A stretch of DNA of 64,000 nucleotides, taken from Scyliorhinus canicula (lineage: Eukaryota). Below the pieces are notes generated by a model, which was given only the letters and a program-made list of their open reading frames with translations, was not told the origin of the DNA and ran no database searches. The stretch spans positions 85,143,982 to 85,207,981 of the forward strand of contig NC_052146.1 in assembly GCF_902713615.1 (NCBI RefSeq), given 5' to 3'. This document shows, piece by piece, positions 5,095 to 34,912 of this stretch (position 1 is its first letter; every line of letters begins with the position of its first letter). The position numbers and the translations under genes were made by a program.

Positions 5095-7417
5095 AATCCC
5101 GGTACACTGTATACCACCCCCCCCCCCCCCCCCCAACCCCACCCCCCACCCCAAACCCGGTACACTGTATACCACCCCCTCCCCCAACACGGTACACTGT
5201 ATACCTCCCACACTCCCCCCCCCCACCCCCAGCCCGGTACACTGTATACCACCCCCTCCCCCAACCCGGTACACTGTATACCTCCCCCCACCCCCACCCG
5301 GTACACTGTATACCACCCCCCACCCGGTACACTGTAAACCACCCCCCACCCCCAACCCGGTACACTGTATACACCCCACCCCCCACCACGGTACACTGTA
5401 TACCACCACCCCCCCCCCCAACACGGTACACTGTATACCACCCCCCACACGGTACACTGTATACCACCCCCCACACGGTACACAGTATACCTCCCCCCAC
5501 CCCCCACCCGGTACACTGTATACCACCCCCCACCCCCACCCGGTACACTGTATACCACCCCCCACCCCCAACCCGGTACACTGTATACCCCCCACCCCCC
5601 ACCCGGTACACTGTATACCACCACCTCCCCCCAACACGGTACACTGTATACAACCCCCCACCCGGTACACTGTATACCCCCCACCCCCCACCCGGTACAC
5701 TGTATACCACCACCTCCCCCCAACACGGTACACTGTATACCACCCCCCACCCGGTACACTGTATACCAGCCCCCCCCCCCACCCCAACCCGGTACACTGT
5801 ATACCACACCCCACCCCCAACCCGGTACACTGTATACCACCCACCCCCCACCCGGTACACTGTATACCACCCCCCACCCGGTACACTGTATACCAGCCCC
5901 CCCCCCCCCACCCCAACCCGGTACACTGTATACCACCCCCCACCCCAAACCCGGTACACTGTATACCACCCACCCCCCTACCCGGTACACTGTATACCAC
6001 CCCCCCCCCACCCGGTACACTGTATACCACCCCCCCCCCCCAACCCGGTACACTGTATACGACCCCCCACCCGGTACACTGTATACCACCCCCCACCCCC
6101 CCCCCCCACCACCCGGTACACTGTATACAACCTCCGCCCCCCCAACCCGGTACACTGTATACCACCCCCCCCCAACCCGGTTTACTGTATACCATCCTCA
6201 CACCCGGTACACTGTATACCCTCCTCATACCCGGTCTACTGTATACCCTCCTCATACCCGGTCTACTGTATCCCCTCCTCATACCCGGTCTACTGTATAC
6301 CCTCCTCATACCCGGTACACTGTATACGCTCCTCATACCCGGTCTACTGTATACCCTCCTCATACCCGGTCTACTGTATACCCTCCTCATACCCGGTCTA
6401 CAGTATACCCTCCTCATACCCGGTCTACAGTATACCCTCCTCATACCCGGTCTACTGTATACCCTCCTCATACCCGGTCTAATGTATACCCTCCTCACAC
6501 CCGGTCTACTGTATACCCTCCTCATACCCGGTCTACTGTATACCCTCCTCATACCCGGTCTACTGTATACCATCCTCAACCCGGTCTACTGTTATTACCG
6601 TCCTCACTACCCATACACTGTATACCCTCCTCATACCCGGTCTACTGTATACCCTCCTCATACCCGGTCTACTGTATACACTCCTTCATACCCGGTCTAC
6701 TGTATACCCTCCTCTTACCCGGTCTACGTATACCCTCCTCACACCCGGTCTACTGTATACCCTCCTCATACCCGGTCTACTGTATACCTCCTCATACCCG
6801 GTCAACACTGTATACCCTCCTCATACCCGGGTCTATGTATACCCTCCTCATACCCGGTCTACTGTATACCCTCCTCATACCCGGTCTACTGTATACACTC
6901 CTCATACCCGGTCTACTGAATACCCTCCTCATACCCGGTCTACTGTATACCATCCTCATACCCGGTCTACTGTATACCCTCCTCATACCCAGTCTACTGT
7001 ATACCCTCCTCACACCCGGTCTACTGTATACCCTCCTCATACCCGGTCTACTGTATACCACCCTCATACCCATACACTGTATATCCTCCTCATACCCGAT
7101 ACACTGTATACCCTCCTCATACCCGGTACACTGTATACCCTCCTCATACCCGGTCTACTGTATACCCTCCTCATACCCGGTCTACTGTATACCTTCCTCA
7201 AACCCGGTCTACTGTATCATCCTCATCCCNNNNNNNNNNNNNNNNNNNNNNNNNNNNNNNNNNNNNNNNNNNNNNNNNNNNNNNNNNNNNNNNNNNNNNN
7301 NNNNNNNNNNNNNNNNNNNNNNNNNNNNNCCACACCCGGTACACAGCATATCATCCCCACACCCGGTACGCTGTATACCATCCTCGCAACCAGTATACCA
7401 TATTCCCTCCTCACACC
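5095..7417. repeat. Two-domain minisatellite: CCGGTACACTGTATACC core with variable C-rich spacers (~5098-6200), then 27-bp CCGGTCTACTGTATACCCTCCTCATAC units (~6200-7229)
   Basis: Direct reading; roughly 35 + 38 units; degenerate units continue after the gap. Confidence 0.95.
7230..7329. other. Assembly gap (100 N)
   Basis: Run of N inside the minisatellite. Confidence 1.
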
Positions 7418-7965
7418 AGTGTTTTTTTAAACTTTTTTTCTGGGTCCCATATCATTTTGTTTACTTGTGGAAATAGTCACCACAATCCAGCACCTGTTCA
7501 GGGAGGCCAGTAGATGAAGATCTTGGAGATGAAGATCGCTATGGATGTAAACAGGACGAGGAACCTTGGTGGTACGTTCATTTTGACCGTCTGCATTCTC
7601 CCTGCCAGGGAGAGCGGGAGTGTAACCCACCTCTGCAGGTCCTTTTTAACTTCCTTTGCCAGGTGATCAGATTCCACTTGTGGATCCATGCCCAGTTATG
7701 GGCTATCTGGATCCCCATGTGGCGGAATTGTTTGGGGCTAGTTTGAATGGTAGTCCCTCCAGCTCTCTCCTTCCCCTGTTGGTGCAAACACTCACCCTGG
7801 GGGTGTTGTAAAAGAGTTTCACCCATGAGGTGAACCCTATCCCTACCCCAAACCGCTCCAGTACCTCAAAGAAGTACTTCCACTCGACTCTGCCGAAGGC
7901 CTTTTCTACATCCAGGGAGACGATCACCTCTGGTGTTCTCTTCTTAGATGGGGTCATAATTACAT

Positions 7966-8180
7966 GTCCGTAAGAAGTCTTACAACACTAGGTTAAAGTC
8001 CAACATGTTTGTTTCAAACACTAGCTTTGGAGCACTGCTCCTTCCTCAGGTGCTTCCTTCACCTGAGGAAGGAGCAGTGCTCCGAAAGCTAGTGTTTGAA
8101 ACAAACATGTTGGACTTTAACCTGGTGTTGTAAGACTTCTTACTGTGCTCTCCCCAGTCCAACGGCGGCATCTCCACATC
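7966..8180 (+). mobile_element. Fold-back Penelope-like pLTR mini-insertion inside the L1
   Basis: Inverted arms 7970-8052 / 8060-8143 plus a 37-nt unpaired tail; 12-bp near-perfect TSD TCATAATT(A/C)CAT at 7954-7965 and 8179-8190; second copy at 33910. Confidence 0.8.
8060..8094 (+). ncRNA. Minimal type I hammerhead ribozyme motif
   Basis: CAC-CUGAGGA-A-GGAGCAGUGCUCC(stem II)-GAAA-GC-UA/GUG: both core boxes, stem I CAC/GUG, palindromic AGCU in place of stem III. Confidence 0.75.
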
Positions 8181-10122
8181 ATAATTCCATTCAGCAGCCG
8201 CCTGATGTTCGCAGTAAGCTGCCTACCATTGACAAAGCCCATCTGGTCCTCTGCAACCTCCTCCGGTACGCTGTTTTCCAGTCTCTTGGCCAGGACTTTC
8301 ACGAGTATCTTCGCATCTACATTGAACAGCAAAATGTATCTGTATGATCTGCATACCATTGGGTCCTTGTCTTTTTTGGGTATCAGCGATATTGTGGCCT
8401 GTGTTAGTGTAGGAGGCAGGGTGCCCCTCACTAGCGCATTGCAAACCTGTCCCATCGATGTGGGACCAGGGCTGGCGTGAATCTTTTAAGAAGTCCGCCA
8501 AGATCCCGTCAGGTACGCACTTTCCCCACCTGGTTGTCAGCATTTGGGCGACATAGCCCATTGGATCTCTGCCCTCGATGCCTTCTGGCAGACCATGATC
8601 TGATATTTTGCCATCAGGACCTGTTTTCTTGGCGCTCGACTTTCCCCTTTAAATTCCACTGGGCCTCCACCAACACCACTTCCGCTTCCAGGGCGACGAT
8701 TCTGTCACTCTGGTCCAGCGAGGCCTTCTCCAGGTCGAGGATCATCCTCTCCTGAGTTGCCACTTTTTCCCACAGCCCTGTCGATGCCTTTTGCGTGGTG
8801 GTCATCGCCTCTGCTGCACCACCCTTGACGCCACCTAGATATCTATATTGATCGCCGCATTTAATGTTGTCAGCGCCTCGTCAGGAAGCTCTTCCATCCG
8901 TCTCCGGTGATGGGGGGGAGGCTGATGCTCATGTCGTTGGTCGCCCTCTCTCCTGGGTGGCTGGGGCCCCCTTTACCTTGTGGGTCCGCTGTCTTGTCCT
9001 CCTGCTGCTCATGGCTCTTTTCCGCTACTCCTGCCGTCTCTTCGGTCCCTCGAGCTCCCGTTTGCTGGCATACATTCATGGTTATTCTCTTCTTGCTCTT
9101 GAGGTAGTTTTGTATTTGCATTTTGGGAAAATTCGACTTTTTGATGGTGCCTTTCGGCTCTGGTTTGGTGGAGAGCCACCTGGTGTGCATCCACTCAGCA
9201 CATCACCGTCACCGGAAGGCGTTGAATATAGAACTTAACACGAACAGATCAGCCGCGGTCTTATTGAATGGTGGAGGCAGACTAGAGGGGCCGAATGGCC
9301 GATGTCTGTTCCTATTTTGTATGTTCATATTAATTAAAAATCTCCAGTTTAGCTATCAGAAGTGCTGAGTTTTTGAAATTGGCTCTCCCAATCTGAAGGT
9401 GCATGCGGTGAAATGCAATTAAATATCTTCATAGAAAACAAAACAGCCTAATTTATTTTGAAATATTATGTGATGGAAAGAAATTCATTTGTATAATGCT
9501 TGTTCTCTATTAATATTATGAATTAGTGTCTAGATTAAAATACTTGCCCTAAGACAGGTATTAGTAAATAAGCAGGAGACTAGTGAGAAAACAAATCTTA
9601 AACCATTTAAAAGATACAATTCCTCACGTCTAACATTTGGGATTTCAAAATGTAAAAAAAAGTCCAGAATGTTTAATCTGATGCATTAGAGCACCTAGTA
9701 AAACTGAAAACTATCACTTGAGTATTCAATCTCCTGCAGTATATTTTTGTTAAATGGTCTATCCAATCACCCCAGCACTGGGTTTTTGACCCTGACTGAA
9801 TCTGCGATTGGTGCTGGGTGGGAGCTGAATTAACCCGCTTGGTGGCATGTCACTTAATAGTTCCATTCCATCTCCATAGGTGGAATCAAGGCTGGCAGGG
9901 CTACACACCTCACGCAGTGAATGGTCAGTCCGGCTCATCAGAGGCCTAATTGTGACCAAATAAAGTAGGCCGAGGGGGTTTTCCCCGTCTCGTAGAAAGA
10001 GGGCAACAGCTTAGGTGCTGAGGGCAGCCTCTCGGCAGGAGGTGGTGGTAGTTTGGAGGGTGCGGTGGGGGGGGGGGGCAGTACAAGCAATCACGTAAAT
10101 TGTAATGTATAACGACATCCAA

Positions 10123-31718: not shown

Positions 31719-33909
31719 TATCCCTAAGGCTTTCTTTAAGAGAGTGAATCCGGTGATCTCTGGGTTTATGTGGGCAAGTAAATCCCTGTGAGTGAAGAAG
31801 GTGCTGTTGGAGTAGGGTCGATGGGATGGGGTGGAGGCGGCCTCATGTAGGTTCACAAGTTTAGGGGCACTGGTAACGGCACCTCTGCCATTCTCGCTGG
31901 CACAGTACTCCTCAAGCCTGGTGGTAGTGGCGGCCTTAAAGGTATGGAGATAGTGGTGGAAGCATACGGGAGTGGAGGGGGCATCGGTATGGTCACCTAT
32001 CTGTGGAAACCACCGATTTGCCCGGTGGGGGGCTTGATGGGGGGTTTTGGAGGTGGCAGCGAGCTGGGATCGAGCGGTTTGGGGACCTGTTTATCGATGG
32101 CAGCTTTCCGTGCTTGGAGGATTTGGAGGAAGAGTTTGAGTTACCCAGTGGGAATGTGTTCTGCGACCTGCAGGCGAGGGACTTTGTGCGGAGGCAGGTT
32201 TCGACCTTTCCGTGCCTGCCACCCCAGGGGATACAGGACAAGGTCGTGTCGAAAATGGGAGTGGGGGAGGGGAAGGTCTCGGAAATTTATAGAGCTCATG
32301 GAATGGGAGGGGGCTCGGATAGGGGAGGGGAAGTGAAAGTGGGAAGGAGAATTGGTCAGGGAATTAGAGGCAGGATTGTGGGAAGATGCCCTGAGTAAAG
32401 TCAACGGGTCCTCGTCGTTTGCCAGGCTTGGCCTGATACAGTTTAAGGTGGTCCACAGGGTGCCTATGAGCAGGTTCTTTGAAGGGGTGAAGAATAGGTG
32501 TGGGCGGTGTGCAGGAGGGCCTGAAAATCATGTCCACATGTTTTGGATATGTCGGAGGCACAAGTGATTTTGGTTGGGATTTGCTGATGTCAAGTCCAAG
32601 GTATTAAAGGAACGGGTGGTTCCGAGTCAAGAGATGAGGATTTTTGTCAGAAGACCCGGGAGTCCGGGGGGGGGGGGGGGGGGCGGGAGAGGCTGATGTC
32701 TTAGTCTTTGCCTCCAAGGTAGCCCAGGGACAGATCTTGTTGGCGTGGAGAGACGCTGAGCCCCCAAAAACGGGGGTATGGGTTGGTGGCATGGCCGGGT
32801 TTCTCAAGCTCGAAAAGATCAAGTTCGCCCTGAGAGGATCGATGTTAGGGTTCGCCCGGAGGTGGCAGCCGTTTATTGACTTCTTTGGGAAAAATTAAGC
32901 TGTCAGCAGAAAGGGGGGAGGGGTAAAGAGATAGAGGGAGGCGTGTGGGGGGGTTGCTGTTTGAGGTGGAAAATAGTTAGTGGGAAAGGGGAACTGGGGA
33001 ACTGTGTATGCAAGCCACGTTGGCTGAATTTGGTTGTTGATTGATTGGGTGTTATTTGTTTTGTTGATTTTTCCTCTTGAAAATGGTTCAAATTTTATAT
33101 ATGCATAAATAAAATATTTTCAAAAAAATAAATAAATACTTGTTTGTGTAAGATCAAAGTTCCAGGACTGAGCTTTGCAGAGAGTTATTTCCTAGAATAG
33201 CTGTCTTAACCTCCCTCCATACGATCCATCCTACAGGTGGAAGTACAGATGGCAGAAGTTGAAAGAAGATTACTTGCTGAAGAAAGTCCTTCGTGTTTAA
33301 TGCACCTATCTCTCCTGAGAAAACAAATGGAGAAATTGCAGAAAGTAAGGAAAACATTATTTACTTTTTATTCTTTGTAGTATTCAACAAGATAATTATA
33401 CAGAGCATTGATTTTCTGGGTATTAGATGGTGAGCTACAAGCAGCTGAACAAATTACCAGTAGTGGGCTCAAAGAAACTGATTACATTTTCATTGAATAT
33501 AATTGTGGGTAATTAATTCTTAAAGGCGCATTGTTTCAAGCAATTTCTCTCTGCAAAAAAAAATAGGAATTTGGCGAGAAATGTATATGTCCACTGCTAA
33601 TGACAGTAAACCAGTCTGCTACATTGCTTTCAGTAAGACTAATTCTGATGAGATTCTGATGCGAGCGGTGACAGGTAGGGCATTTGACAAGGCAGACCAC
33701 AGTATTCCAATCCAATACTTATCTAATAGGAGGTACACATGTACACATAGCAAAGGTCTATTGGCTGTGATCAGGGGCAGGCTGACCATTCACCTCCCAG
33801 GGACACCCAATGCAGATTTTGTGGCCCCATTTTGGGATCACAGATTCAGCCACTGAGAGGTGAAGGTGGAAGCACCCCTTTCATTTCTGTCTCTGGCTAT
33901 TTTCAGCAG

Positions 33910-34097
33910 CCATGATGTGGCGATGCCGGCTTTGGACTGGGGTGAGCACAGTAAGAAGTCTTACAACACCAGGTTAAAGTCCAACAGGTTTGTTTCAAAC
34001 ACTAGCTTTCGGAGCACTGCTCCTTCCTCAGGTGCTCCGAAAGCTAGTGTTTGAAACAAAACTGTTGGACTTTAACCTGGTGTTGTAAGACTTCTTA
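33910..34097 (-). mobile_element. Fold-back Penelope-like pLTR mini-insertion, second copy
   Basis: Tail 33913-33950, arms 33951-34034 and ~34032-34098 (shorter); perfect 13-bp TSD CTATTTTCAGCAG (33897-33909, 34098-34110). Confidence 0.82.
34000..34034 (-). ncRNA. Minimal type I hammerhead ribozyme motif
   Basis: Reverse complement CACCUGAGGAAGGAGCAGUGCUCCGAAAGCUAGUG, identical to 8060-8094. Confidence 0.75.
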
Positions 34098-34912
34098 CTA
34101 TTTTCAGCAGAGCAGGAAAGATGGTGGATCAGGAAGCTGACTTACAGCTGGTTTGACGTTGCTCACACCATTCTGGAGGGGCTATTTCAGAACTTCTGTA
34201 ATTTGGAGCAAAGCGGGTGGTTGTTTTCCTGAATCTGACCTGTAGAAAGGAGGCAGGAACCAAGGATTGGTTAGATGAGTAAAACTGGTGTTGTCTCCTT
34301 TACAGTTCATCATAAAATGCTGTTAGTTGCGTTATATCTATGTTTTCTAATACATTATTATAGTACTGTGATTGGAATCCGGTAACATTGTTACTTTTCA
34401 TGATTAGCATGATGTCAAGTGAAAGAACAACACTTCAAAAGTGGAAAAGTTTTCAGATGCATTAGAAAACACTGTCCACTGGATAAAATGTTATGCTGCA
34501 TTGTACAATATTGAAATACTGATCCAGTGTGAGATCCAGAAAGTATTGTATAAGTTATCCCCATTGCTCTCATTCATTCTTCATTGAACAGCTTAGCTAT
34601 CTGTTTGGCTGTTTGAAAATTTTGATAGATACATGAGATTTTGCTTGCCTTCAAAGGCGCTAATTGATTCTGTACTGCAGAGTTTGTTTATACCACTCTC
34701 ATAGGGATTTGTAAGTTTGTTTCTTTTGATGGATTTATCAGTTTATGAAGAGAATAATAGTTTTTCAAACGCCTTTCAAGTATATTTACTTATTTTGACA
34801 GGTTTTTTACTTTTCAGTGACTTCCAAATGTTATTAGTGGGCTTGTGAGTTCTATTTATAAAGTGGATAATGGGTGACCAGCTGCAATTCAACTGTTAGT
34901 TCTGTGCACATC

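Follow-up and report, generated by a model that had tools for sequence, protein, structure and literature searches.

A 0.2-kb fold-back repeat in the genome of Scyliorhinus canicula as a probable insertion by-product of a Penelope-like element

Insertions of endonuclease-positive (EN+) Penelope-like elements (PLEs) are recognizable by pLTRs in partial tandem, next to which lies an inverted copy truncated at its 5' end, and by a tail of 30–40 bp that is confined to one end (Evgen'ev & Arkhipova 2005; Arkhipova 2006; Craig et al. 2021, PMC8557442). Hallmarks of PLEs are two internal start sites of reverse transcription (RT start sites) with the tail between them, the cleavage and extension of both strands, and the inverted 5'-truncated copy (PMC11167929, PMC8557442). 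In PAc, a Poseidon element of Anolis carolinensis that Frangieh et al. (2024, PMC11167929) characterized in vitro, the tail is enclosed by a pair of neighbouring internal RT start sites, with the hammerhead upstream of these. Both DNA strands undergo cutting and extension, and neither reads nor insertions begin at the hammerhead cut site. The minimal hammerheads of metazoan PLEs are of type I without a stable helix III and have an unpaired base after A9, a G10.1-C11.1 pair, a palindromic segment at 15.2-16.2 and a short helix I; they cleave poorly and only as dimers, and pairs on opposite strands, 100–700 bp apart, have already been noted (Cervera & de la Pena 2014, PMC4209133). The non-LTR retrozymes of animals are ORF-less, derived from PLE pLTRs and hammerhead-bearing, form direct tandem repeats and are thought to cycle via circular RNA (Li, Clavereau & Pollet 2026 preprint, 10.64898/2026.07.22.740005).

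The repeat described here is located at positions 7966–8180 of a stretch of 64,000 nucleotides of the S. canicula genome (contig NC_052146.1, positions 85,143,982 to 85,207,981), which is referred to as the window. With EN+ PLE insertions it has in common the head-to-head inverted copy, a one-sided 37-nt tail, a variable target duplication, a hammerhead in the repeat and a parent with RT and C-terminal GIY-YIG domains in tandem units, whereas both copies are here reduced to a leader of ~85–120 nt and only the fold-back is left. The traits listed for PAc all appear to have counterparts. However, the PAc ORF starts inside the hammerhead and its reverse transcription starts 111–118 nt into the ORF, whereas the ATG is found here at +119, at the outer start site; moreover, PAc inserts without homology to the target, whereas many 3' junctions here share 2–4 nt with it. 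The hammerhead motif agrees with the minimal metazoan type in each of the structural traits given above, except that its helix II has 5 bp, compared with typically 7–8 bp in trematode PLEs. In contrast to the retrozymes, with which it shares an ORF-less, hammerhead-bearing unit derived from PLEs, the window repeat is an inverted pair with target duplications and shows no sign of ends at the cut site. Inverted 5' segments also arise in L1 elements by twin priming, when the second DNA strand also primes cDNA synthesis; there, the position of the second, internal priming varies and the resulting segments are free of overlap, whereas here both cDNAs would start at fixed sites and copy the same leader, giving a true palindrome.

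The fold-back unit and its copies

A repeat finder applied to the window detected two inverted-repeat blocks around a 7-nt centre, which form a 0.2-kb fold-back with arms of ~83 nt. The features are given below in window coordinates, with leader positions numbered from the C of CUGA as +1.

7706–7957, minus strand: host LINE RT remnant, downstream part (RVT_1 profile 63–121, E 1.1e-5)
7954–7965, no strand: left copy of the target site duplication (TSD), TCATAATTACAT (repeat family D4; 11/12 identical to 8179–8190)
7966–7969, no strand: filler GTCC, four bases in the gap between TSD and left arm, matching neither target nor element
7970–8052, minus strand: left arm, antisense PLE leader from about -3 to +81, no tail (repeat finder, copy alignment, homology to the autonomous leader)
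7970–8028 and 8085–8143: inverted-repeat block 1 (59 nt, 98%; repeat finder)
8026–8052 and 8060–8086: inverted-repeat block 2 (27 nt, 96%; repeat finder)
8053–8059, no strand: centre junction CTTCCTT, unique to the window copy and partly repeating the adjacent CTCCTTCC
8060–8094, plus strand: minimal type I hammerhead motif (CAC, CUGAGGA, A, GGAGC-AGU-GCUCC, GAAA, GCUA, GUG)
8060–8143, plus strand: right arm, sense PLE leader from -3 to +81 (repeat finder and leader alignment)
8144–8182, plus strand: tail, leader +82 to about +116/+120, right side only (copy alignment, leader alignment, bimodal 3' ends)
8179–8190, no strand: right copy of the TSD, TCATAATTCCAT (repeat family D4)
8192–8455, minus strand: host LINE RT remnant, upstream part (RVT_1 profile 1–54, E 3.1e-7)
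33897–34108, minus strand: second, independent fold-back of the same kind, with its own 11-bp duplication GCTGAAAATAG

The arms, the single-copy tail and the 12-bp TSD with one mismatch were recovered from the sequence and by the repeat finder as an earlier note on this DNA had described them. The tail reaches as far as the ATG of the parent ORF (+119) or stops immediately in front of it; since TCAT is common to target and tail, its end can be placed only to within 4 nt (8178–8182), and the tail measures 35–39 nt. The filler was recognized from the sequence and by comparison with 29 other copies, in which the arm starts at (G)TAAGAAG or a few nucleotides deeper into the tail. Both arms differ by one substitution and by one base absent from the left arm; this base is the G (G12) of GAAA in the left-arm copy of the hammerhead (about 8019–8052), whose loss had been reported correctly. 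Because the flanks encode consecutive parts of RVT_1 on the minus strand, the insertion splits the RT remnant of a non-LTR (LINE) element, in agreement with the proposed target; its L1 type was judged by eye only. As RNA, the unit was predicted to fold into a single near-perfect hairpin (-158.9 kcal/mol, z = -25.9). The repeat finder detected no tandem array around the unit, which is an inverted pair. Matches to MIR821, MIR1219 and MIR949 in an Rfam scan were rejected as generic long-hairpin matches, far below the gathering scores (97 vs 249 bits), and the miRNA identity was considered spurious. In the second fold-back of the window (33897–34108), the left arm is cut within helix II, the right arm starts from about +1 and the tail reaches ATGGCT; its fold-back point differs from that of the 7966–8180 unit. 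Upstream of the unit, the window also contains a 27-bp minisatellite (6500–7217 and 7330–7383, ~27 copies, 90% match), interrupted by a run of N at about 7218–7329 that represents an assembly gap or a masked stretch.

In the 4.22-Gb genome, a first look gave at least 4,189 candidates for the 215-nt unit, and the 40 that were scored were 92–96% identical over their full length. Genome-wide numbers of arms were obtained as exact-pattern counts. The 21-nt core occurred 35,540 times, which corresponds to more than 35,000 leader arms, and the 30-mer +30 to +59, downstream of the predicted cut site, 37,223 times. Chance was excluded because the 27-nt motif had 0 expected matches in shuffles of the window and the exact 32-nt motif pattern was found 28,057 times in the genome, compared with 0 for its reversed control.

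Thirty copies were aligned together with their flanks. Their outer left end was near-constant, at (G)TAAGAAG or sometimes 2–6 nt deeper into the tail sequence, whereas the 3' end ranged between ...CACA and ...CATGGCTACCA, often with 2–4 nt common to the target. TSDs differed in sequence and in length (about 7–15 bp; 21 of the 30 copies by script, more by eye). The centre junction was different in nearly all copies, several of which had an additional CTCCTTCC. Left and right arms had identical majority sequences in a comparison that covers the 84-nt non-coding arms only, and at a diagnostic A/C site the two arms agreed in 24 copies and were discordant in four. The copies decay neutrally. Together, these traits of the copies are in line with fold-backs that are made anew at each insertion from one source, and in line with neither the copying of a fold-back master nor a DNA transposon.

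For a structural sample, 50 chromosomally ordered hits were combined with the earlier loci, and 30 loci were read in chromosomal order. These comprised head-to-head pairs with arms of 80 nt to more than 1,350 nt, solo arms and 5'-truncated direct copies, with the short leader-only class making up about one fifth of the insertions in the ordered sample. The window fold-back is one end of this continuum of arm lengths. In pairs, one arm was usually tailed and the other tail-less, and the tail could be on either side. Among the first 100 hits of the +30 to +59 pattern, there were 17 short (130 nt or less) and seven longer close pairs. All 24 were head-to-head (-,+), and the tight fold-back pairs (130 nt or less) included none in (+,-) orientation. 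In this orientation of the pairs and the two groups of 3' ends described below, the earlier assignment of an inverted arm lacking a short tail to the signature of PLEs has proved sound. A further observation concerns a 39-bp satellite (at least 39 copies, 94% match) that extends from L079:1507–3029 into L080 (G000:C1, about 2594512–2597670). Its unit joins the hammerhead's 5' portion, from the helix I strand through the box and helix II to GAAAG, to a short inverted GTGAA piece and is devoid of a cleavage site, with CCGA instead of CUGA in most units. As it is located between a tail-less and a tailed arm, it is the centre of a fold-back, expanded into tandem repeats.

The parent element and its hammerhead motif

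The genome search that had been suggested for an RT/GIY-YIG parent and for the copy number of the unit led to a PLE. At one locus (L014), the tail runs on into an ATG and an ORF. With this ORF fragment as a query, 150 loci were scored, and more than 100 of them had open frames of ~925 aa with an identical score; some loci were 2,984 bp apart (in tandem) and some formed head-to-head pairs. Another locus (L051) contains three tandem units of 2,984 bp, each with a hammerhead motif and a 905-aa ORF. The encoded protein comprises an RVT_1 domain (5.9e-10), a YIDD motif, a CX4CX2C linker and a GIY-YIG domain, the last of which scored just under the Pfam cut-off of 22.6 (E 5.8e-4, 20.5 bits), with a visible VVYLIRC...WYIGET motif; homologous proteins carry PF01541. 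A Pfam search with a 112-aa N-terminal piece of the ORF gave no meaningful match. The L051 leader aligned base for base with the right arm and tail of the window unit from -8 to about +120/+124, with the ATG at +119. Derivation of the unit from a PLE, as first proposed, is borne out by this alignment to the leader of an element with RT and GIY-YIG domains.

The closest proteins are from sharks (Scyliorhinus torazame 91%, Heptranchias 84%, Mustelus 82%), followed by those of turtles (~45%) and then of echinoderms, ticks and amphioxus (33–43%). Judged from its sequence, the parent is a canonical endonuclease-positive, autonomous PLE of the same genome with many near-identical copies. The CX4CX2C linker suggests membership in the Neptune-like group (PMC8557442). 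Two leader subfamilies exist in the genome, whose motifs differ only at N7, the first base of loop II and position 17; their upstream 3' UTRs are 81–85% identical, compared with 93–97% for +1 to +120. A further leader subfamily was noticed in RNA reads as loose ends at L051:4086–4088; it has UGC in loop II and GUGAUUCC after the cut site and is abundant in transcripts.

A composite insertion at L014 (1489–2297) is situated between 12-bp duplications and reads, in order, as an inverted arm, the leader with the first 574 nt of the ORF and, after a direct jump, a second leader whose first base is -6. The insertion was first considered a 570-bp internally deleted non-autonomous unit, which was rejected because it maps to the leader and ORF nt 1–574 followed by a template jump. 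L014 provides a natural example of template switching at the presumed 5' end of the RNA.

In the window motif, helix I is formed by CAC/GUG and helix II by GGAGC/GCUCC with the loop AGU. The box CUGAGGA (8063–8069) is followed by a bulged A (8070), and GAAA (8084–8087) overlaps a palindromic AGCU (8087–8090), with A17 at 8091 and the predicted cut after A8091. The elements that the first reading had named, from the hammerhead boxes and helices I and II to the palindromic AGCU, are present and match the published minimal PLE hammerhead. The motif was compared among eight PLEs of 33–100% protein identity (L104–L107, L110, L111, L051 and the window), using a descriptor that required the boxes and a helix II with 4 or more bp and imposed none of the other features. 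In all eight, pairing is maintained at each of the seven positions scored (three in helix I, four in helix II), six of which show two to four pair types, and the bulged A and G10.1-C11.1 are retained. GAAA is invariant and helix III is always palindromic (AGCU, AAUU or AGCGCU), while N7 takes all four bases and position 17 is A, C or U and never G. In three of the eight, CUGA and ATG are spaced by 117–118 nt. The relative encoded by a metagenome contig (L105:2843–2885; 52% protein identity) has a U3-A8 instead of a C3-G8 core, as described for some trematode elements. The descriptor found no match in three of the 11 loci scanned (L108, L109, L112); the Heptranchias homologue (L112) had no leader motif within 1.5 kb and is probably a 5'-truncated copy.

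Based on its compensatory changes, the hammerhead is seen as a conserved leader structure of the parent with a putative ribozyme function. The earlier description of a complete hammerhead ribozyme in the window holds for the motif and its covariation only. The covariance-model check proposed for it was negative, with 15 matches and no hammerhead family in the Rfam scan of 7000–9200 at E<=10. The minimum-energy folds of the leader form no helix II, which counts neither for nor against a motif that reportedly requires dimers or protein. Nor do insertions start from the predicted cut, as detailed below, and the 83-bp hairpin of the fold-back would sequester the motif and prevail over the ribozyme fold. 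In the fold-back, the hammerhead is a passive passenger.

Arm ends and RNA reads

The 3' ends of 52 arms were located at 79–87 in 20 cases and at 118–125 in another 20, with 12 unreadable by the ungapped measure used. These two groups (about +81–87 and +118–125) account for the 37-nt tail. In the predicted folds of the L051 leader, GUUGGACU (+50 to +57) pairs with AGUCCAAC of the tail (+93 to +100) within +50 to +104 (window 8112–8166), and enclosed by this pairing is a GUAAG/CUUAC hairpin whose end coincides with the inner RT start site. By analogy to the PAc stem-loop, the modelled structure may be the recognition structure for the reverse transcriptase.

The 5' ends of the arms were mapped by extending exact-pattern counts stepwise upstream of CUGA. 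The number of arms kept fell from 35,540 at 0 to 30,231 at -3, 22,452 at -6, 18,444 at -7 and 15,145 at -9, so that ~57% of the arms end within 9 nt upstream of CUGA. The biggest single loss step was that from -6 to -7 (17.9%), as compared with a background loss of 5.3% over the three bases +26 to +28, or 1.8% per nucleotide. Among the 4,008 arms changed at -7, 2,386 had G in place of the templated C. Long copies have a TATA box (TATATAAA) at -36 to -29 and CCATTC around -6, which places the 5' end zone of the arms 30 nt downstream of the TATA box. At L057, an arm beginning at -7 directly adjoins 19 nt of antisense sequence from the end of the tail. Other arms have their 5' ends at -16 to -40 or inside the hammerhead motif, and three of the 17 short pairs from the first 100 hits of the +30 to +59 pattern fold exactly at the loop of helix II. 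The ends at -16 to -40 constitute a second, rarer class, which is not accounted for by a start at -6. Fold-back arms reaching this region were observed at L092 (G000:C1, about 3271300–3271420) and at L055, L056 and L090; at L092, the fold-back is centred on the region of the TATA box, a palindrome in its own right at this locus.

No class of insertions starting at +30, the predicted cut site, was found, as 94.7% of the arms with an intact +30 to +59 segment keep the 3 nt preceding the cut. The RNA data comprised one raw-read run, of poly(A) single-cell RNA-seq, and otherwise contigs. In this run, whose library is unsuited to 5' ends, no pile-up of read ends marked a transcript start or the cleavage site. 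On both strands, the leader was read 50–100x as deeply as the ORF, and 91% of the reads ran into unrelated flanks. Such a leader-heavy depth is what co-transcription of thousands of dispersed copies within host transcripts would give and is no proof of expression of the window locus. Strand-switching reads at the fold-back centre occur, and there was no excess of A-to-G changes in the RNA reads beyond subfamily polymorphism.

Origin of the unit and alternative explanations

Very probably, the window unit was dead on arrival, as a minimal product of the insertion of an autonomous PLE that is currently active; this essentially corresponds to the extreme truncation product given as one alternative in the earlier note. 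Its right arm and tail are the first ~120 nt of the PLE leader, with the minimal hammerhead followed by the RT start region, and its left arm is the inverted leader, ending at the inner RT start site. In the proposed mechanism, the RT/GIY-YIG protein would introduce staggered nicks 10–15 bp apart, giving rise to the target duplication. Each nicked strand would then prime cDNA synthesis inside the RNA, either at about +81–87 (no tail) or at about +118–125 (tail), and both cDNAs would run to the 5' end of a unit-length transcript starting a few nucleotides upstream of CUGA. Joining of the cDNAs head to head by template switching or microhomology would produce a junction unique to each event, and full-length copies would arise only from read-through RNA of a tandem array. 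From the distribution of 5' ends, we infer that many templates were unit-length transcripts starting at about -9 to -3, of which the short arms would be run-off cDNAs. A single start site is too simple, given the spread of the ends over -3 to -9 and, in some cases, -16 to -40. The pairs folding at the loop of helix II suggest a snap-back of one cDNA rather than two primed cDNAs in some events, and the four copies with a discordant A/C site may reflect a mixed mechanism or the use of two RNAs.

The most viable alternative, which is nonetheless unlikely, is that the fold-back forms a self-propagating ORF-less family, in which a fold-back master is transcribed and copied in trans by the PLE enzyme. 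A family of this kind would account for the high copy number (at least 4,189 first-look candidates and 17 short pairs per 100 ordered hits), the near-constant left end and the full-length matches at 92–96%, and the unit does hold both RT start sites. However, the left end is accounted for by the fixed inner RT start site, each copy has its own centre while both arms share one majority sequence, the tail occurs on either side, and arm lengths form a continuum to more than 1.3 kb. In addition, the short form contains neither the TATA box nor the ORF segment downstream of the RT start sites, and PAc requires that segment (PMC11167929). Lacking promoter and ORF, a fold-back does not propagate itself, and by analogy to the Anolis element short copies would not be re-mobilisable. 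The mobile unit envisaged at the outset is not supported, for the same reasons.

Exaptation of the unit as a source of hairpin RNA, with co-transcribed 83-bp hairpins giving rise to small RNAs or serving as substrates of dsRNA editing or sensing aimed at the PLE leader, appears highly unlikely. Extreme hairpin stability, the leader-biased depth on both strands with most reads entering unrelated flanks, indicative of co-transcription, and the strand-switching reads at the centre are in line with this idea, whereas the miRNA matches in Rfam lie far below the gathering scores, A-to-G changes do not exceed subfamily polymorphism and the copies decay neutrally.

There is very little probability that the unit is a retrozyme-like element. 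In such a cycle, the transcript of tandem hammerhead units would cleave itself into single units, which would become circular before their reverse transcription. The motif belongs to the minimal type requiring dimers, the autonomous parent does occur in tandem, and vertebrate non-LTR retrozymes are reported to derive from PLE pLTRs (bioRxiv 10.64898/2026.07.22.740005). Nevertheless, the window unit is inverted and not tandem, insertions that start at the cut are missing as a class, read ends do not accumulate there (in a library unsuited for this purpose), and the only short tandem array seen, with its 39-bp unit, is free of a cleavage site. The retrozyme-like non-autonomous family that the earlier note had offered as its second alternative is thus not upheld. 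A MITE of a DNA transposon with terminal inverted repeats, already dismissed there, would explain the inverted arms and the flanking direct repeat and is practically negligible in view of the variable duplication length (about 7–15 bp), the asymmetric ends with a one-sided tail, the homology of the arms to the leader of an RT-encoding element and the variation of the 3' end with target microhomology.

As a by-product of PLE insertion, the fold-back is ordinary in kind and records how PLEs insert. A more far-reaching and tentative reading, which we consider possible rather than probable, is that leader-only insertions represent a natural record of PLE integration, with two coordinated cDNAs per event, one from each internal RT start site, running off a capped 5' end, with most attempts abortive and full copies obtained only from tandem read-through RNA. 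If so, the G at -7 in 2,386 arms would be cap-templated. As reverse transcription would start only 81–125 nt from the 5' end, most attempts at retrotransposition would be abortive, which would explain the need of PLEs for a tandem organisation and suggest that the hammerhead is not used to define template ends. Neither the insertion start points nor the read ends, the latter from an unsuited library, gave a sign of cleavage in the life cycle of the element.

For the annotation of this 4.2-Gb genome, it follows that an abundant repeat of 0.1–0.2 kb, with the appearance of a hairpin, a MITE or a miRNA precursor, is to be filed as PLE debris. With respect to ribozymes, the cross-species comparison adds covariation support for the minimal PLE hammerhead, including its U3-A8 core variant. 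As to the biology of PLEs, the genome-scale counts agree with the picture obtained in vitro for the lizard element, with two fixed RT starts, the use of both strands and no use of hammerhead-cleaved RNA. A new observation from them is that about half of the arms stop in a zone of 6–9 nt, at a distance of 30 nt from an upstream TATA box, which is suggestive of run-off on short transcripts.
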